Positions 1 to 19,709 of a stretch of DNA of 30,454 nt are shown one piece after another. The stretch is from Wallemia ichthyophaga EXF-994 (Eukaryota; Fungi; Basidiomycota): NCBI RefSeq assembly GCF_000400465.1, contig NW_008806297.1:1-30454 (forward strand), read 5' to 3'. Under the pieces are notes generated by a model, which saw only the letters and a program-made list of their open reading frames with translations, ran no database searches and was not told the origin of the DNA. The position numbers and the translations under genes were made by a program. How positions within the stretch are numbered: the stretch's first letter is position 1; each line of letters opens with the position of its first letter.

Positions 1-360
1 CGCTGCAGTGAGGTGGTCTGCGTGTGCGTGTGTCTCCAGAATATGGCGTACGTCTAATTTGCTCGTGGATATGTGCGCTAGTAGTCCATCGGCACTCTGC
101 GTACTCACATGCCCACTATTGCTGTCATAATCGAGCACTGGGTCTATCACCGCGGCTTGCAGTGTTCTAGGACAGTGCAGCACGTACGTCCATGTCGAAC
201 TGTCCTTATCGTAGAACGTCTGGGTTGTGGGTGTGTTGGCAGCTACATGCGTACGGAATGGCGGGGTTGGAGTGGCTGCAGCAGTACTTTGAAGTCTAAT
301 ACCGCCTTTTATCCCACCAGCTACTTTCCAATTACGATTACGTATAATTTTCGCTATCAT
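1..360 (-). CDS. Persulfide dioxygenase (ETHE1/Blh-like metallo-beta-lactamase fold), 5' part; runs off the left edge of the window
   Basis: Manual translation of 360->1 gives 120 stop-free codons: MIAKIIRNRNWKVAGGIKGGIRLQSTAAA...TQTFYDKDSSTWTYVLHCPRTLQAAVIDPVLDYDSNSGHVSTQSADGLLAHISTSKLDVRHILETHAHADHLTAA. It has the HxHxDH metal motif in the PDO-typical ILETHAHADHL context plus IDPVLDYD. The basic, acid-free N-terminus resembles a mitochondrial presequence. Not in the ORF track because it has no stop in the window. Confidence 0.9.
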   Translation of the reverse strand, partial: MIAKIIRNRNWKVAGGIKGGIRLQSTAAATPTPPFRTHVAANTPTTQTFYDKDSSTWTYVLHCPRTLQAAVIDPVLDYDSNSGHVSTQSADGLLAHISTSKLDVRHILETHAHADHLTAA

Positions 361-447
361 GGTCGAGTCACTAATCACGTCATTCACCGATAAACTTCTT
401 GGTTGGTTACCATCAAAATTTAACCGAGTTTAATGTTATAGAGGAGA
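361..447. promoter_or_regulatory. Putative bidirectional promoter between the persulfide dioxygenase and SSU1-like genes
   Basis: Only 87 bp separate the divergent ATGs at 360 (-) and 448 (+). It contains GAGTCA (TGACTC, bZIP-like) and TCACGTCA (CRE/E-box-like); these motif assignments are speculative. Confidence 0.55.
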
Positions 448-1506
448 ATGTCAAGCAATCTGTCAAGCTCTCTGCTAAGCTCTCGCCTCAGCCGCTCACT
501 CAGGAAGCGTACAATGAACATAATACCTTCGTGGTTCGCTGTAACGATGGGGACTGGGATTCTTTCAATCCTGCTATTTAACTCACCTTACCAATTCAAT
601 GGCCTGCACGTAATAGCCGGCGTGATATTCGCCATTAACATCATCGTATTTGTTGTGTTACTGATATTTACTATACTCCGATACGCTATTTGGCCATCGC
701 TGCTCCCACTGATGCTCACACACCCCGTCAACCTTTTTTTGGGGACGTTTCCAATGGGATTAGATACGCTGATTACAATGATTGTCAACTCTCTAGTCCC
801 CCGATATGGTTACAACTACGTCTTACTAGCCTATGTGCTGTGGTATATCAGCGTTGCCATTTCAATAATCACCTGTATAGGTATTCCTTTTATTCAGATG
901 AGCAGGCAGAACGTCGAAAATAGACAGATATTCGCGACTGCACTTCTACCCACCGTCAGTACAATAGTCGCAGCGTCTACAGGTGCTTCTGTGGCGAATG
1001 TCCTCCCAGACTCACAGGCTAGGATCACTATTGTCATTTCATACATCCTCTTAGGCATGGGACTGCCAATATCCGTACTCCTCATGGCTAATTACAGCTA
1101 CAGACTCATCCTATTCAAGTTGCCCCAGCCTGCTTTCATTAGCTCGACCTTTATCACTATAGGGCCATGCGGGCAGTCTGCATATGCCATCCTCAAGCTG
1201 AGCAGCGATGTTAATATGCTTATCTCAAAAACAGGTCTTCCTTGACTCACCTGCCTCAGCTTCCCTATCGGCACCCTGGCCTTGTCTGCTCAAGAGCTGG
1301 GCAAGGAGATGGACTCAACAGGGATGAAAGTCGTCGGTACTATCCTGATGATGCTCTTGTTGATAATTTGGCTGCTTCTTTTTCCAGTGACTCTTTACTT
1401 CAGCGTCATTAAGGATTCTTGGTTCACTAGCCCGTGTCTGTCGGAAGTCGGTGGCCAGCCGCCTTCATTTGAGGAGGTTGACTTTATCAAGAACCGCAAG
1501 TATTGA
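448..1506 (+). pseudogene. SSU1: SSU1-type sulfite efflux pump (TDT/SLAC1 family), apparently disrupted by an internal deletion and an in-frame TGA at 1243-1245
   Basis: PSWFAVTMGTGILSILL..PYQF.GLH, HP..LFLGTFPMG, LLP.VST.VAA, GPCGQ and FPIG...QELGKEMDS..MKVVGT match the fungal Ssu1 subfamily. ORFs 448-1245 and 1282-1506 share a frame. The conserved WGFGL.WL helix and FN.GWW motif between GPCGQ and FP.G are absent. No phase-compatible canonical intron removes the stop. Family identity is high confidence; pseudogene status is moderate. Confidence 0.75.
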
Positions 1507-1818
1507 ACGAATATAGATATGTTTTATAGAATCAAAGCCAGGATGAGATTGTATGATGTAATGTATTTAATTTATTTTCCCTAATTTTTTTCACTGTCTT
1601 CTTATCGGGTGCTAAGAGGATGGGCAGGAATAAGCTCGATTCTGGCTGGAAAGGACGCCAGCAGAAGCAGTCTGAGGATTAGAAGCCTAACAATGATCTT
1701 AAGGGGGGCTATAAGAAGAACTTTAAGAAGGACAATAAGAATGACTCTAACCACTCAAGTAAACACGACAGAGGCTACAAAAACCACAGCAAGTCACATA
1801 GAAAGTCATCTCACGACC

Positions 1819-3724
1819 ATGTCATCAAATGTGAGCTATTTGTTTTGATATTGAGTGAAATGCTCAAAACATTCTCAAGCTTAACAAGGCGTTACAGAAG
1901 CCTTCACGTTTAGAGCCTTTAGCGCCTCCAGCAACGGACAGCGAGCACGGTGAGGTGTTGACACGTCTCGACGTGTGCAAACCTTCACCAAAAGTGAGCG
2001 CTATAAACATCGAATAAACACAGCATGCTCATATGTATCAGACTATGCTCAAGCTTCTTCATCGCATCAAAGCTTTAGTCGTTCAGCTCCTCCCTCATCA
2101 AGTCGATATGGACGTGTTGAGGCAGCCAGAGGTGAAAAGCCAGATTATTAACAGTAACACTGTTTCAACGTTCATTGACGCCAGTGGCGATCTCAAAGAT
2201 GCTCTCCCTTTTGCCCTTCTCAAGCTGAAACAATATTTCCAAAAGGAAGCTCTTCAAGATCAGTCCGATTACGACGAACATATGTGCAGATCAGTCGCTT
2301 CCGAGGTTCTTTCCCGATACGTCATGCATCGTGTAGACGCCCAAAAGCTACCGAAAGTCATGTCTCACCGTTTCCTCTACTTAGAGTCAGACGGTGACCT
2401 CAGTGCACCGCTGAGCGTGTTGGAACTGGCCATAGATCTTCACGCTACTTTTTTCCTCAGCTCAGATGAATCCCAGACGGCGGTAACGGCTTTGTGGAAT
2501 GGCTCGTGGGTGCAGATACACACCGATACCAGTCAGAATCAGATAGAATACGTACCATATCACAAGACAGACGGTCACTCCCTCTTCCACCACTTTGATC
2601 CATCGAAAATCGCTGTACCCAAGTATCAGAACTACTTGAGGATCGTCATATGGGTTGTCTTTCTCGCTGTTTTTTCATTCTCCGTCCAATCCCCAACAGA
2701 ACAACTTAACCCTAAGAAGAGATTTGACGAGTGGGAGTATGTCTTGTATGGCATGAGTATTAGTTTCTTGTTCGAAGAAGCTAATCGCATGTTCAAGAGC
2801 TTACGTATACGCGGCCTATCATCGGTTTTCAATTTCTGGACGATAGTCAATGTCATCACCTATGTTATACTCACTCTCTCATTCAATCTGAGGGTTGCTG
2901 GGATATACAGTGTGGATGAGAGTGACAAAGACAGACTACATATGCTCAGTTTTGAGATTCTCTCAATGGCTTCACCTCTAATTTGGATCAAGCTACTGCC
3001 AATTTTCGATCTCTTCCTGTATGTAGGCACGATGGAGCTTGTGATTATTCGGATGATCAGGCAGAGTTTAGTCTTCTTCTTGCTACTCGGTGTCGTTTTT
3101 GCAGGGCATGCTCAGGCGCTGTATGCATTAGATGCAGCTGACGGTGAGCAGGGCAGTTTCGCAAGTATATGCAAAATTCTACTCAGGAGTATATTCGGCG
3201 ATGCAGACTTTGGTACAGTTGCAAATCAGGCACGATTCGGTCAGCCGTTTGGCGAGTTTATCTTCTACGCTTGGTGCTTCGTTACCATAATCATCCTCTT
3301 AAACGTACTTGTCGCGCTTTATGCCTCCAGCTATGAAGGTGTAACAGACGACGCCGTCAACGAGTTTATGGCCTTCTTCGCTGGGAAGACAGTCAGTATG
3401 ATTCGTACACCTGATCACTTTGTCTATGTGGCGCCGTTTAATTTAATTGAAGATATCTTTGTCGCGCCTTTTGAATGGATAGTCACGAAAGAGACATACA
3501 GCAAGATCAACAGGGTAGTATTAAGTGTACTGTTTTTTATACCGCTTAGTATCATTGCAGCGCTAGAAGCTAATGATGTCTTTAGGCAGACGACTGTTTA
3601 TAAAAATTTTATCGACACGCGTATTCCATTTATGGACGCGGACGTAGACGATTTAGATGAAGAGGATGAGGAGTATAAGATATGCAGACATAGGTTTGAA
3701 GATTTAAAGAAAAGGCTTGAGTAA
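1819..3724 (+). CDS. YVC1: Vacuolar TRP-type Ca2+-release channel (Yvc1/TRPY1)
   Basis: Spliced model: 1819-1830 (MSSN), intron 1831-1879, 1880-1993, intron 1994-2041, 2042-3724. This restores ...CKPSPK|TMLKLLHRIKAL. It shows ALPFALL, VPKYQN, WVVFL, six-TM/pore region, ILLNVLVALYASSY, FVYVAPFNLIE and an acidic DDLDEEDEE tail. GTAAGT at 3721 may add a tiny last exon ending about 3792. Confidence 0.9.
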
Positions 3725-10559: not shown

Positions 10560-11975
10560 TATAATGTTCTAATTCCAAACTTATCAACCTTGGCACAAAT
10601 AATTTCATTGATCCGTCCCAGCAATCCATTTTTGAGAATGCTATGATGAAAAGCGCCCTTCACCTTATCGTGATTATTAAAAGAAGTCTCGGACGCTTAT
10701 CACGTACAAGTTTGTTACTAAAATTTTACTCACAGTGATTTCACATCTAAAGGAGATAATCACGAAAACTAGAGCGGTTAATCTTTCGAGTAGCGAGAAT
10801 CTTTCTTGCTTTGTTTGGGACTACTCAGCTTTGTAAATCATTGAATCAGTTGTGACGCGGTGAAGTAGATCCACGTAATGAAGAGATGCATATTTTAGAT
10901 CATTGTTATATTCGTGGGCGAGTAATCATTCAATCAATACAAAGTTCTGATTGATGCAACCGGTAAGATGAGCACCCATCATCATCGAATTGGCTGAAAC
11001 TTGTCACACGGGCAGCCTTTTGATGGCTGCTAGCTAGATTTGATACTCAGGATATATAAATCTCGCACTCTAAATGGCTTTTCAATGTCAATGAGATCTT
11101 AACCATGTCTCTTCCATAATTATTTGAAATCTCGAAATGCACCTGGTGAAGCCAAAGTCCCGATTTATGAGTTGGGCTGACCCCCCATTTTCTTTGCGTA
11201 AAGTGCATCTGATAGGCTTGCAATGACCTGAAATGTCAATGGTTTTTTTCTTGGAGCCGCCATTGAGTCCTGTGGACGCGACTTGTCGGGATACGTATAT
11301 CGTGTCTAGAAGGATGAGTATATTAAAGTTCCGGGTGCTTGAGATATCTATCAGCCAGGAATGTTTGTTTCTATCGACTAAGCACGCGAAAACCTTTATA
11401 TATGTCCTTTAGCGTACTCCAGAGCGATGTCGGATTGCAACTTCCGAACAGCCCATAGGGCGCAAATGGAGACACATGAACACAATACTGGCGAGATATT
11501 GTAACGCCTATTCAGGACTATTTATGAAGCTTTTTTATTTGGAGATCATCAAAACTCGTAAATGCGCCGTCTGAGATGAGATAGGTGGTAGTCAAGAAAT
11601 CCCACTAAGTGGATATTGGGCAGAGGATTGAGATGGGGATGTATTTGGAATGCTGGAAATGTTATGAAAATAATGGTGTTGCTAAAGTTTTCAAATTGTC
11701 AGTATATGGTTTCTCTGCGTTCGTCTTTGCACTTATTTGGCTATTTGCACAGTAATTGGAGTAGATATGATTCTTTCAACTGCTAATCATCTGCTTAATC
11801 CTATTTTTAGTAATTTAAGTATTAATTGCCATATTCAAACCACTCTGCCACTTCTGTCCGTCTTTCTACATCAGCCTATATGCAACGACAAAAGGCAGCG
11901 GCAGAGAATAAGTAGAGTCGTAGCTCTTTGATAACGCTACAATACTACGATGAGCAAAATATCGCAGAATTCTGC
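10560..11975 (-). pseudogene. Possible heavily decayed protein-coding relic of unknown family
   Basis: About 1.4 kb AT-rich gap in an otherwise dense genome. One minus frame has long coding-like stretches broken by about 17-18 stops. A GTGAGT...GATAAG 38-nt intron (about 10696-10733) joins in phase to a stop-free about 45-codon final exon (SETSFNNHDKVKGAF...FGIRTL*). Stop depletion is weak and no family was recognised. Confidence 0.3.
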
Positions 11976-14125: not shown

Positions 14126-16506
14126 CTAGGTACGCTGCTGATTACGCTTTGTCGGTGTCCACCACTGCGGTTCCCAATTCAATCTGCTATACTCGACCTC
14201 CTCATCTCCGAGCTCCGTTCCAAAATCGAAAACATTGATGAAAGTCTGTCCCGACATTTTATTCGACGCTGCAACGAGATAGCGATCAGATATTGCCACC
14301 TGCCAAATATGCATTAGGTTGCTCAGTATATCCTTCTTAAGTTTACCATCGCGCGCGTTCCACATCTTGAGCATCCCATCGCTACCAGAGATAATTTTCT
14401 GCTCGTCGTGGGCCATGCAGCTGATAGCGCTGTCGTGTCCATCGAGCACATGCTCACATTCGCCACTACGCAGATTCCATATCTTCAGATTCGAGTCAGC
14501 GCCGGCAGAGATGAGACTATTTGAGTTGAGACCGAGCAGCCCAACGAGACTAGAGTGACCTGAGGTACTATCAGAGACCTACAACTACTCGTTTAATACG
14601 CAGACACCCACCATCAAGCGATTGCAGCTGCTCGCCTTTGTCCGTCGACCACACCTTCACCGAGCCATCATAGCTTCCAGAGGCGCACCTATTGCGCGGA
14701 GCGTCGAGGACGACTTTGTAAACTGGGTGTGCAAGTGTGAGCATCAGTTTGAATCTACGAAATACCCCACTTACCCATGTCATTGTGTCCTCGCAGCACG
14801 TGCTGCACATTACCCGTTACAGTATCCCAAATCCTCACAGCTTGGTCAATGTTAGCTAGTCTCACTCAAAGCCATGTGCACCCACTAAAATCATAGCTGC
14901 CAGAGACAAGTGTCCGTCCGTCGCCAGCCACACTGCGCACGGCATTGGTGTGCCCCGAGAGCAACTTGAGCGGCCAAGGATTATCGCGCGCCCTTACGTC
15001 CCCATCATTGATCGTCCACGGCTCGTCTCTCGTTGGCGAGGGTAATCTCCAGATGCGTATTGTGAAATCTCGTGAACCACTAACGATAATAGGATAAGGC
15101 GGCTCATACTCCCTCGTAGATACGTTCCATTTGGGCATTATAATAGCCAGGCATCGAACAGTTGAGAAATGCCCCCAGAGGACATGCGTACATCGACCCG
15201 AGGGTATATCCCACACTCTAACGGTGCGGTCCGTAGCGCCGCTAACGAGAGTGTCACCGACATACTGTAATGCCCACACACCGCCAGTATGACCTCTCAA
15301 TCTTTTTCTCAAACGACCAGTTTTAGTGCAGCTTATATCGATGCTTTTGTCGTCACCATCGGACGCTGTAACTATTTTGTCCGAATCGAACTGCAGACAA
15401 GTGACGACATTCTGGCCATGTCGTTCAAACTCTATTGAAGAACGCGGCTCGTTCTCAAACCAATTATTTCGAACGGCGTGTCTCTTTTTGAGGATATGCT
15501 TATATGGATGGCTTTTCCAAATGCTGGGTGATTTAGCCGGCGGTGTACTAGATTCGGAGCTGGCGACGGGAGGCGGAGTGAGAGGGGTACGCGAGGCGTG
15601 TGAGGGGTAAGTGGGTTGTGAACTGTGAGTGACTTGCGTTTTATGTATGCTATCCTGCTCCGCTTCTTCCAGACTGGCGCAGTGAGTGGTGCGATTGGCA
15701 TGCTGATACGCTTCCTGGCGTTGAGCAACAAGGTGGTCCTCATCGCCGAACCACAAGTCGGATCGAATGCCAGCGCTCTTCCAAGCAGCACGGTCTTGAT
15801 CGATAAGCCTGCGCCATGTCTTGGACACAGTCGCCGCACGGCCCAAATCGTCAATATCGAGCTGGTTGAGAATGAGCGAGGAAATTTCGAGCGGCAGATC
15901 AGCCACAAAATCTTTCTGTAGCGCTGGACTGATAAATTCGTGTACATTCCTTATCGCGGTTATGTCAGAAAGACGTAAGAGGTTGAGAAGTATATGCGAC
16001 TGGGTGGCAGTGGATAGGGATGGGTATACGTTGAGTAGGTGGGGGAAAGAGAGAAGTACAGGGAGTGTGTTATTGTGAGTGTGGCTGCTAGTGTGACTGT
16101 GACTGTGATGCGCACCGCTGTCATCCCACTCAGAACTCCGTTCAAAGCGTGGTGGACTGGCCAGTGGACTGGGGAGGGGTGATCTGACGCTGCCGCTACT
16201 GCCAACAACACCAACGCCTTCATCGCGTAACTTCTTTTTCGGCGGACTGTCCATCGATCGCTGCCTGTGGACATCGTAGCTCTGGTAGCTCGCCGTATGG
16301 CCATTTGGGAGACTGAAATTGAAGCTGGCGACGCTCTCTGGTAGCTGGCTTGTACACAGCGGATACTGCTTCCGATTAAGCTGAAGGGGCTCAGAGCGAA
16401 GACTGTTGACAGGAATCTCAGGATAATCTATTATAGTCTTCTTTGTCGTAGTCACTATCTCCGTCTGGACCGTTGGCTCTAAATTTATGAAATGCTTTTC
16501 TGACAT
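14126..16506 (-). CDS. CDC4: F-box/WD40 SCF substrate receptor Cdc4/Fbw7
   Basis: F-box DFVADLPLEISSLILNQL. WD40 repeats VVTCLQFDSDKIV, GHTGGVWALQY, GHFSTVRCL, GHTNAVRSV, GHSSLVGLL, GHDSAISCMAHDEQKIISGSDGMLKMW. Three phase-compatible introns in about 14550-14885. Confidence 0.93.
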
Positions 16507-16737: not shown

Positions 16738-19709
16738 TTAATGCCTTGGTGGATATTCACTGTATGCAGGTGCAGGGGATTCATTCACTACTGTTAAGTG
16801 CGTACGCGAGTCAGTTGCCGAATTGACCGACGCCTCACTCAATTCTGACTCAAAGCTATCCATCCGCTGTGGCATTGGTCTGTCAAAGGCGTTTATTGGT
16901 CTGCTGAATGTATTCACCGTTGGCGTCGCTTCGTCTTCTTCATCGTTCAAGTTCACAGGCGAATAAACCCCTTGATTATTCCTCATGCTATCCAGTAGCG
17001 GTCTTTCATAACTTTCATCTACCTTGTGCAGCGATCCAGTCGAAATGCCAAAGTCATTATTATGTGCTTGCTCAGCCAATGTGTCCTTAGATTCTAAAAT
17101 TGAAGGCATTCCACCTTTATTAAATGCTAAAGTCGGTCCTGTCGACTGATAGTAACTATACATACTCCCAGGTGTACCCGCACCCGTTCTATCAATGTTG
17201 TTTCCAGCAACTGCCGAATTAAGTGATCTGAAATCCCAATCCATCTCTCCGCGATCTCTAATCGGCAGCTCCTCCAGCTGTTCCTCTGTAACAGCCTCGA
17301 ATTTAAGTCCATCCGATACGATCTCCTCCTTGAAGTTGTTCGATTTGTGCGTGAACTCTGGTAGCACTTGTTCAAGAAGATGAACATGTTTATCGTGAAC
17401 TTGTATAGTAAACAGATCAGCATGAAGGGCTGCATGACCAAATCGTTTCGCAAGTCTCCCTCTATTCACGTCCGCGTTCTGGTTGTGCACTTTGCTCGTC
17501 GCCGCCTCTACACTGCCTGGTAAGTAGTAATAGAACTGCTTTGAGAACTTCCTGTTGAGCATGTACTTGAATACGATAACGGCAATAATTGGTGGGATCG
17601 CCGCTGCCCACTTTCCATAACCCCAACCCATCTTGAGGCCAAGCGATAGAAGAACAATGAGTTGCATCGCTATTAGCGAGAAGAGCATTCTGTTCATAAT
17701 GACATTCCATATTCTTCCGCCTGTTTCAACCCCCGTCACGAAAACGTACATTAGTTGATATTTTTGAACAAATGCGCTAATCAGGAATATAATAAACGCA
17801 GCTGCAGCGACAAGAGGTGCAATTGGAGCATAAATCATTGCAACACTAGCCATGAAAAGCATTGAGGCGTAGTAAACTGCATATTCGAATGGAGGTGGAC
17901 TAGTCCATTCCTAAGTTTACAGTGAGCATGTTTTCCTTTCAAAACCCAAAAAAAAAAAAGACTTACTTTGATATCTCTCGGTGTTCTACCAAACACATGC
18001 GTACGGATAAAGATAAAGATGAGATTGGTGAGTTGAGCGAGATCGAAGAATACCAAAAAACCTCTCATTGGGAACCACTTGAGCCAGAATGACGCCTGAC
18101 TGACATAGGCGCTCTCTATATCTGAAGGAAGTGACTTTAAAGTCGCCGTTATCTCCGAAAGGCTGTTCTGGTCGTGCGCATGTGACACAATACTGCTGAT
18201 AAGACGGAATGCAACACCGATCAGAGTGAAGATGAACAATTGAGAGATGATCAAGAAAGCAAATAAGCGTGCTATAACAGCTCTGTCTAATCTAGATTCT
18301 GTTGCTGCACCCTTATACTGCGTCAACTTTCTAATAATGATTGGTAAGTAGTATGCGAAAATACCGGCCACTATAGGCGGTAAAATACCAGCCATAACTG
18401 AGAACGTCCATGGTGACTTACTCTGCCAATCTCTCAAGCCCTCAAAGTAAACAGCTGTTGCAGATATGTTTGCGAGGAAGGATATGAAAACGAGTGGGAT
18501 AGTGTTGAGGAAGCAAACGAAAGCCAAAAAGAGCCATCCCCACATCTTGGTAATCCCTGATGGAGGGTTGGTAAGATTGCTCCATATAATATCTCTTGGA
18601 TTAGGTGCGAGTTCAATGTTTGTGCCGTTTGGGTGTTTGTTTCTGCACTTCTGAGCGACAACGTGTGCAGCTGGAATGGAGACCAGCGAAGCAAAGCCAA
18701 AGTTTTCAGCTTTTTTGAATTCGTGGTTATCTCTTGTAGCTTCAATTTGAGTTTCGTAACGCTTTATTTTATCAGTGTAGTACGTGATAGCATCAACCTG
18801 TTTTCCACCGAAACAAAGAAAACCACCAACTCTATGAAGAGGACGTGGTCTGTTCGCAATGGTGCCTTTCTTAAAGTATGTAGTGAGAGTCTGCTCGAGT
18901 TTCTTGACGGCATTGTTGTGTTTTTCTATAAATGTAGGTAATTTCCCAACCCTTCTTGAAACATGCGTAGAGCTGAATTCATACGGAACTTCAATCGAGC
19001 GTTTATTTTTCCTGGAGTTGAGAGCATTAGGGTCACTCTTGAGAATAGAGAGGAGACCGCGATCAGACATGAGTTTCTTCGGTAGATTTTGAATGAGGAG
19101 GGTTCTGGCATAGAGGCTTGTTTGGTACTCTTCAGATCTAAACCACTCCTTACGCAAAGTAACCATTTCGCGTGTATGTACCCAGATTCTCCAGAGAACG
19201 ACAGCAACAATAAAGTAAGCAGCAGCGCAGTGAGCCCAGAGTACACGACCACTAACTGCGATGATAGTGGTAGCGTCTAGCCAAGTTCTATCAGCTTCAT
19301 CGATGTATTTATAATTGTAGACGGTATTGATAGGGATCAGCGCGCCGCAACAGATAACAACGATACAGCCGAATACTTCGCAGAGCAAGCGCAGGAATCT
19401 AATAAAGGTGACTGCATCGAGACCAATCTTGTCAACCAATTGAGATTCCTTCATGGAGAACATGGGCTTCACCCAGCTAAACAAGCTGTCATTGAGTTTT
19501 GGGAGGTGTTTGACAGCGTCGAGAGACTGTTTAGCTTTGGGGGCATAAACAACCTTGTTGCGCGGTCGGAGAAGGGAGAATAGGAGTACGACGATGAGGG
19601 ACACCGAGGTCATAACGGCGAACTGCAACCACACGGCAGAAGCGTCAACGTGCTTTGAGTTGTTGTATGTTCTGAGAGCATCCTCTGAGATGTCTGCGAA
19701 GTCGACCAT
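16738..19709 (-). CDS. OSCA/TMEM63 (CSC1/RSN1, DUF221) osmo/mechanosensitive cation channel
   Basis: RPRNKVVYAPK, IGLDAVTFIRFL, LAPNPRDIIWSNL, YQLMYVFVT.VETGGRIW motifs. A phase-0 intron at 17911-17966 (GTAAGT...CTCAC...TAG) joins RTPRDIK|EWTSPPPFEYAVYY. Confidence 0.92.

Follow-up and report, generated by a model that had tools for sequence, protein, structure and literature searches.

A head-to-head persulfide dioxygenase and SSU1-type transporter gene pair in Wallemia ichthyophaga EXF-994, present in the window as the decayed end copy of a tandem array

The first two genes in a 30,454-nucleotide stretch of the Wallemia ichthyophaga EXF-994 genome (contig NW_008806297.1, positions 1 to 30,454 of the forward strand; hereafter the window) encode a persulfide dioxygenase (PDO) and a transporter related to SSU1, a pump for sulfite efflux, and they are transcribed away from each other. 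This head-to-head layout was confirmed, and the window holds the last, decayed unit of a tandem array that is specific to this strain and repeats both genes together. As the explanation of the locus as a whole we favor, at slightly better than even, a divergent PDO-SSU1 pair within an amplified unit that would couple the production of sulfite to its disposal.

The 5' part of the PDO gene (codons 1-120 of 330, assigned from its translation and protein matches) occupies positions 1-360 on the minus strand, with its ATG at 358-360. The open reading frame (ORF) contributes 120 codons and then runs off the left edge, which is why the gene is missing from the ORF list; about 36% of it lies inside the window. 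The transporter ORF is on the plus strand, from the ATG at 448 to the stop codon at 1504-1506, and the two start codons share an intergenic region of 87 bp (361-447). The initial annotation had described exactly this geometry, a PDO starting at 360, an SSU1-subfamily pump starting at 448 and 87 bp between them, and the coordinates, the spacer length and both gene assignments stood up. We are very confident of the identities of the two genes, a type II PDO and an Ssu1-clade TDT transporter. The spacer is also 87 bp in strain E3P77 (L001) and in a second EXF-994 scaffold, KE007235.1 (L006), and it is longer in W. mellicola, at 116 bp, and in a third Wallemia-like lineage (L008, assembled from a read archive), at 130 bp. 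The earlier caution that proximity by itself is weak evidence was justified. Nearby divergent gene pairs at this locus are 116-402 bp apart, the genome contains 514 genes per Mb and is about three quarters coding (PMC3849046), and a spacing of 87 bp is unremarkable for it.

The full-length PDO of the other strains has 330 residues and is encoded without introns. In searches against the PDB, the 120-residue fragment from the window matched 9G8T (E 9.2e-17) and 4YSK (E 3.8e-15), while the full-length protein aligned along almost all of its length, up to the protein end, with PaPDO of Pseudomonas aeruginosa (9G8T, E 4e-65) and with PpPDO2, the type II PDO of Pseudomonas putida (4YSK/4YSL, E 2.8e-59). 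Compared to these, the matches of the full-length protein to human ETHE1 (4CHL, E 5.6e-15) and to GloB/glyoxalase II proteins (1e-9 to 1e-15) were much weaker. With proteobacterial type II PDOs the Wallemia enzyme shares 47-50% identity, and among the NCBIfam models it matched the dioxygenase domain of Blh best (E 9e-82); Blh belongs to the type II PDO group (PMC5702731). The PF00753 match of the 120-residue fragment was weak and below the cutoff (E 0.0026), and the full-length relatives carry the PF00753 annotation.

The part of the enzyme that lies in the window terminates in the metallo-beta-lactamase metal motif, ETHAHADHLTAA. The minus strand encodes ETHAHADH at 13-36, in which the HxHxDH motif is present as HAHADH (H111-H116, positions 13-30), as found from the translation and the alignment to PaPDO. 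PaPDO acts as a dioxygenase on glutathione persulfide; its metal is bound by His71, His146 and Asp163, and glutathione by Arg174, Arg244 and Arg247 (PMC12856154). H111 corresponds to His71 and is the only member of the iron triad (2-His-1-carboxylate) within the window. The equivalents of His146 (in PGHTP) and Asp163 (in TGDS), as well as all three arginines, lie beyond it; the two ligands were read from the same-species copies L001, L006, L007 and L012, and the triad is retained in the full-length copies. Of the arginines, R174 and R244 are retained, and R247 is a Lys in W. ichthyophaga and an Arg in W. mellicola. By homology, the enzyme is a type II PDO of the SdoA/Blh/PpPDO2/PaPDO group with a predicted persulfide dioxygenase activity.

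The protein starts with a 43-residue extension (positions 232-360, minus strand) that is absent from bacterial PDOs, whose alignments begin at residue 44. These residues include seven Lys and Arg and no Asp or Glu, and from its composition the extension looks like a mitochondrial presequence. Close type II PDO homologues (43-53% identity) were seen in Agaricomycetes, Pucciniomycotina, Tremellomycetes, Ascomycota and chytrids, many of them with N-terminal extensions, and in the match list the fungal homologues were interleaved with proteobacterial sequences of about 47% identity. Among bacteria, type II PDOs have been reported only from Proteobacteria (PMC5702731), and the eukaryotic PDOs described in the literature are type I.

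The transporter ORF (448-1506, plus strand) is the remnant of a TDT/SLAC1 gene, with 352 codons if read through compared to 409 in intact copies. It matched PF03595 (SLAC1) in two stretches with an E value of 1.5e-64, and its matches beyond Wallemia are fungal proteins, mostly labelled "sulfite efflux pump SSU1". In a neighbor-joining (distance) tree of 30 sequences, all retrieved from databases, the Wallemia proteins and other basidiomycete homologues fell inside the SSU1 clade with 99% bootstrap. This clade also contains the proteins of Saccharomyces, Schizosaccharomyces octosporus, the CTG clade and Pezizomycotina including Onygenales, and the S. pombe Mae1 and Mae1-like proteins lie outside it. 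Placement in the Ssu1 clade and not in the Mae1 clade is thus supported by the tree, and, as the initial annotation had stated, the pump is a TDT/SLAC1 protein unrelated to the transporter of the bacterial operons. We infer from this relationship that sulfite is the probable substrate. An alternative is that the transporter moves another anion, either malate and other dicarboxylates or oxyanions of the tellurite and selenite type, in which case the pair would have no product-export logic. The identity to Saccharomyces Ssu1 is only about 20% (tblastn), many relatives are named "C4-dicarboxylate transporter/malic acid transport protein", and a PDB search with the transporter gave zero matches to a relative of solved structure. 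However, the 99% bootstrap separates it from Mae1, and with TIGR00816 (TehA/Mae1-type) it scored 128 bits, below the cutoff of 237. We therefore regard another substrate as improbable.

The SSU1 copy in the window is broken. Compared to strain E3P77, window positions 1-1238 correspond to L001 9455-10692 and positions 1239-1608 to L001 10909-11277, and the 216 bp between them (L001 10693-10908) are absent at the junction 1238/1239. The loss comprises 57 codons, including a hydrophobic stretch (residues 276-316), and roughly the first 25 bases of the only intron of SSU1 with its 5' splice site. Alignment to the intact copies identified the leftover 3' end of this 45-46-nt intron, CCTTGACTCACCTGCCTCAG, at 1240-1259. 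Since the 216-bp loss makes the reading run into the intron remnant, the TGA at 1243-1245 is in frame, and the frame of the window copy is both interrupted and short of the complete series of transmembrane helices. All remaining W. ichthyophaga SSU1 copies that we saw are intact, with 409 residues, and carry the 216 bp. Because of the lost segment and the stop codon, the window SSU1 is most likely a deletion pseudogene. The deletion looks recent, since the remnant has very few non-synonymous differences from the intact copies.

Two ways of rescuing the frame by splicing were considered. Splicing from the GT at 1235 was rejected, as it would leave an intron of only 25 nt and shift the frame. 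The cryptic GTCTGC site at 1176 used by the published gene model would give an 84-nt intron and keep the frame, yet it would remove more of the protein. That model, GME4544_g (exons 898-1175 and 1260-1506, plus strand; PMC3849046 Table S6), bypasses the TGA with the predicted 84-nt intron and joins exons across the deletion, and its 174-residue protein is identical to the product encoded in the window. The nearest protein matches come from W. ichthyophaga, strains L001, L007 and L012 differ from the window at this locus, and the exact agreement with the gene model assigns the DNA to EXF-994, probably as a scaffold whose start falls within a repeat. The pseudogene has in this way been annotated as a 174-residue protein, and the other two EXF-994 SSU1 copies have been annotated as N-terminally truncated proteins of 259 residues though their full 409-codon frame is open. 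The truncated ORF of 265 residues is not on record in public assemblies, where the deletion allele was not seen elsewhere as a called ORF.

The broken copy belongs to a head-to-tail array with a repeat unit of 2810 bp, made up of a 3' fragment of BUD22, PDO and SSU1. Window positions 1-1608 are the last repeat unit, a stub of one more unit follows at 1609-1811, and from 1812 onward the DNA is unique. The stub is a 203-bp fragment of the BUD22 coding region on the plus strand, with 93% identity to L001 8470-8671 and 99.5% identity to L006 10929-11131. At the junction 1811/1812 the array meets its unique right flank, and in single-copy strains the 3' flank of SSU1 is joined directly at this point; BUD22 in those strains lies just beyond the PDO gene. 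The EXF-994 scaffold KE007235.1 ends inside the same array, in the order SSU1, BUD22 fragment, PDO, SSU1, BUD22 fragment and PDO 3' end; the units there recur every 2810 bp and are 99.95% identical. A third scaffold, KE007243.1 (L013), starts with GDI, BUD22 and PDO and breaks off after the first 59 nt of SSU1. The BUD22-proximal PDO on it (L013 147-1001) has a 10-bp tandem duplication, TTCAGAATGG, with a frameshift that truncates the protein to 284 residues (EOQ99198.1). Both end copies of the array appear damaged, with PDO affected at one end and SSU1 at the other. The EXF-994 array accordingly includes two or more intact copies of SSU1 and at least one of PDO in addition to the decayed end copies, and its copy number is a lower bound because the scaffolds break inside the array. 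Strains L001, L007 and L012 have one copy each and no BUD22 stub. To the left of the array in KE007235.1, a 1.8-kb segment (L006 4829-6616) contains no ORF of at least 80 residues and has a GC content of 38.9%; one portion resembles window 11120-11750 at about 70% similarity, and the array joins 25 nt inside the PDO start. A second site of insertion, a rearrangement or an error in scaffolding would each account for this left join.

The deletion, the array or both could be artefacts of the short-read assembly of EXF-994, the real locus then being a single intact pair. The genome was assembled by SOAPdenovo with K=21, three scaffold ends fall inside the repeat, the deletion allele was not found elsewhere as a called ORF, and the three other strains are single-copy and undeleted. 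On the other hand, an identical unit-to-unit junction was recovered three times, twice in KE007235.1 and once in the window, and the copies carry real substitutions, with 98.3% identity between the window unit and KE007235.1 compared to 99.95% within KE007235.1. Their synonymous divergence of 8-13% from the single-copy strains, combined with a low ratio of non-synonymous to synonymous differences per site (pN/pS), is not the pattern of errors, and the deletion has clean breakpoints in otherwise well-matched sequence. We judge an artefact to be unlikely and are confident, though somewhat less than of the gene identities, that the array and the deletion are real.

The same unit is unusually variable. 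When window 1-1608 was set beside its counterparts in L001, L006, L007 and L012, the synonymous difference per site (pS) between strains or copies was 0.05-0.13, and the pN/pS of the array copies relative to the single-copy alleles was 0.04-0.18. The DNA flanking the unit is 99.5-99.65% identical, and single nucleotide polymorphisms (SNPs) in W. ichthyophaga have a genome-wide density of 0.13-0.40% (PMC6738226). By these comparisons the 2.8-kb unit stands out as an island in which diversity is unusually high, and the pN/pS values indicate that PDO and SSU1 are both under purifying selection. Old haplotypes, exchange between paralogues and selection are all candidate sources of the high diversity.

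In the scheme that we propose, PDO would be imported into mitochondria and would oxidize glutathione persulfide there to sulfite. The sulfite would leave the mitochondrion, and the part that is not assimilated would be exported by Ssu1 at the plasma membrane, where Ssu1 proteins act. Through the short shared promoter region and the joint amplification, the making of sulfite would then be tied to its removal, in parallel to those pdo operons of bacteria that include a transporter for sulfite or sulfur. A functional link is plausible because sulfur-related partners of PDO recur, because there is a bacterial precedent and because the two genes were amplified as one unit. The coupling of detoxification to export is a plausible reading that draws on adjacency and analogy, and we put the chance that the PDO-SSU1 adjacency is functionally meaningful at even.

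The initial annotation had made the coupling depend on conservation of the adjacency in relatives. Within the genus the claim held: the head-to-head pair is kept in W. mellicola and in the third Wallemia-like lineage. Outside the genus it failed, as no SSU1-like sequence was found within 8-10 kb of the PDO gene in Trametes coccinea, Vanrija albida, Sporobolomyces phaffii or Podospora australis. In two of these fungi, PDO has another partner from sulfur metabolism. The PDO homologue of S. phaffii (BAABVN010000002.1, L010 5903-9340) is head-to-head with a homologue of mitochondrial SQOR at a distance of 175 bp; the latter matches human SQOR with an E value of 2.7e-83, and the arrangement looks like a fungal SQR-PDO gene pair. 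In P. australis (MU864377.1, L014 7351-11199), the PDO homologue, which has 297 residues, introns and no N-terminal extension, is divergent from a YeeE/YedE-type gene (PF04143, E 1.1e-32) 1.6 kb away. A YeeE-type partner is typical of bacterial pdo operons. A sulfur-pathway gene therefore adjoins PDO in three of the five lineages sampled (Wallemia, Sporobolomyces and Podospora), with a different partner in each, a count that covers only five non-Wallemia or Wallemia-like contexts. The occurrence of the same PDO family beside SQR or YeeE-like genes in other fungi raises the odds that the Wallemia pairing is not due to chance.

Evidence for a shared regulation of the two genes was sought in published RNA-seq data and in the spacer. 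Between 10% and 30% NaCl, GME4544_g, the SSU1 remnant, rose 4.5-fold, from 1.65 to 7.40 reads per kilobase per million and from 17 to 78 reads (PMC3849046), counts that are possibly common to paralogous copies and that refer to salinity, which is not the relevant stimulus. No protein with the PDO N-terminus was present in the differential-expression table for these two salinities. In the spacer, a motif scan found ATCACGTCAT at 374-383 on the plus strand, a match with one mismatch to the CYS3/MetR-type sequence ATGRYRYCAT. Similar half-palindromes are located 14-30 bp upstream of the PDO ATG in three Wallemia spacers, as ATCACGTCAT, ATGACATCAT and ATTATGTCAT, the latter two at about 9905-9925 in L002 (W. 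mellicola) and about 7960-7985 in L008. The motif was not enriched in the window, with 12 matches compared to 14 expected by chance, and the putative CYS3/MetR-like site near the PDO ATG is a weak lead.

Several of these observations weigh against a coupling of the two genes. The predicted compartments probably differ, with PDO in the mitochondrial matrix and Ssu1 at the plasma membrane, and because of this the relation between the two would be at most indirect. The window SSU1 copy, as it stands in the sequence, cannot make a normal 10-helix transporter, and both the array and the deletion derive from short reads assembled with SOAPdenovo in 2013. A rise of the SSU1 remnant from very low counts, in a table from which PDO is missing, is all that the available expression data show, and it gives no support for co-regulation. 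The substrate of the transporter and the activity of the enzyme are deduced from homology only. The conservation of the pair carries little weight, since it is seen in Wallemia only, inside a seven-gene colinear block and in a very compact genome, and the adjacency is not conserved beyond general synteny.

Many of the same points would follow if the adjacency were incidental, that is, a product of the compact genome and the colinear block, with the two genes independently regulated and the repeat being a neutral or SSU1-driven variant that includes PDO by chance. Colinearity extends over the entire BUD22-PDO-SSU1-YVC1-RRM-muHD block in three Wallemia lineages, and the lack of the pair in four other fungi, the width of the other divergent spacers, the gene density, the salinity table with the SSU1 remnant and not PDO, and the absence of CYS3-like enrichment are all as expected under this explanation. 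However, a sulfite producer placed beside a homologue of a sulfite pump is an unlikely coincidence among about 4,900 genes, and neighboring sulfur genes recur, as SQR in Sporobolomyces and as the YeeE-like gene in Podospora. An incidental adjacency is a serious possibility that we hold at clearly less than even, and the coupled PDO-SSU1 pair remains the explanation that we favor. A bolder proposal is that fungal type II PDOs form recurrent two-gene modules for sulfur detoxification in which the partner is interchangeable, with SQR in Sporidiobolales, a YeeE-like protein in Podospora and Ssu1 in Wallemia, and that the W. ichthyophaga module is under copy-number selection and diversifying or balancing selection as an adaptation to the sulfide or sulfite met in hypersaline habitats. 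The signs of such selection would be the tandem amplification and the synonymous divergence of 8-13% compared to a SNP density of 0.1-0.4%. We consider this proposal unlikely, if worth stating.

To the right of the array, the first gene is an ORF for a YVC1/TRPY1-like channel (2033-3724, plus strand), found in the ORF survey of the window. The rest of the window encodes, besides this channel, an RRM protein, a muniscin, an F-box/WD40 protein (ORF at 14866-16506), an RSN1/CSC1-type channel, an Hsp70, a GH3 glycosidase and a DUF3429 protein. The RSN1/CSC1-type (OSCA-like) channel, on the minus strand at 16738-19709, is divided between two ORFs that overlap, 17835-19709 and 16738-17862, which points to an intron or a frameshift. 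In the other strains, the 10 kb to the left of the pair contain BUD22, GDI, a protein without a Pfam match and a mitochondrial carrier. An SQR, rhodanese or YeeE-like gene, which the initial annotation had proposed to look for to the left of the window, was found neither within about 10 kb on that side in other strains nor in the 30-kb window. The carrier gene (L001 2204-3067) encodes 287 residues and lies about 5.7 kb to the left of PDO. Mammalian dicarboxylate carriers transport sulfite and thiosulfate, and this carrier could matter for sulfite leaving the mitochondria.

Sulfide and persulfide oxidation have hardly been described in fungi, and the Zajc 2013 supplements were uninformative on sulfide, rhodanese, thiosulfate and cysteine dioxygenase genes. 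The impression of the initial annotation that the arrangement is undescribed in fungi was borne out by the literature searched, which contained no description of a fungal PDO-SSU1 pairing or of this Wallemia array. If the pairing is functional, it would give fungi a way of turning reactive sulfane sulfur into sulfite for export, with parallels in the bacterial pdo-transporter operons and in the use of cysteine dioxygenase and Ssu1 by dermatophytes. The locus would also be a new kind of SSU1 structural variant, co-amplified with a likely source of sulfite, to be set beside the cases known from wine yeast.

The literature describes pdo operons of bacteria that include a TauE or YeeE transporter. 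The Wallemia locus resembles the bacterial sulfide-oxidation operons (sqr-pdo, bigR-blh and cst, with TauE/SafE or YeeE/YedE) in that the gene of a type II-class PDO, which would make sulfite, is located beside that of a putative membrane transporter for a sulfur oxyanion. In contrast to them, it is a eukaryotic divergent pair with a TDT/SLAC1 (Ssu1) transporter and no sensor or repressor gene nearby, and its enzyme is probably mitochondrial while its pump is probably in the plasma membrane. In dermatophytes and Candida albicans, cysteine dioxygenase and Ssu1 drive sulfite secretion and are linked by shared regulation. The likeness to this route is a sulfite-producing dioxygenase that would feed an Ssu1-family pump, and the Wallemia transporter falls in the same SSU1 clade as those of Onygenales and the CTG clade; the source enzyme in Wallemia, however, would be a persulfide dioxygenase, and the link is physical adjacency. 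In wine strains of Saccharomyces, translocations and inversions raise the expression of SSU1 (PMC3904918, PMC8150848). Wallemia shares with them an intraspecific structural variation centered on SSU1, whereas the variant of this halophilic basidiomycete is a tandem amplification of 2.8 kb with PDO included. Finally, the mitochondrial pathway of animals and plants (SQOR, ETHE1, rhodanese and sulfite oxidase) has in common with the fungal system a PDO targeted to mitochondria, as predicted for Wallemia, that acts downstream of SQR, and the Sporobolomyces homologue adjoins an SQOR gene, but the fungal enzyme is type II and not ETHE1, which is type I.

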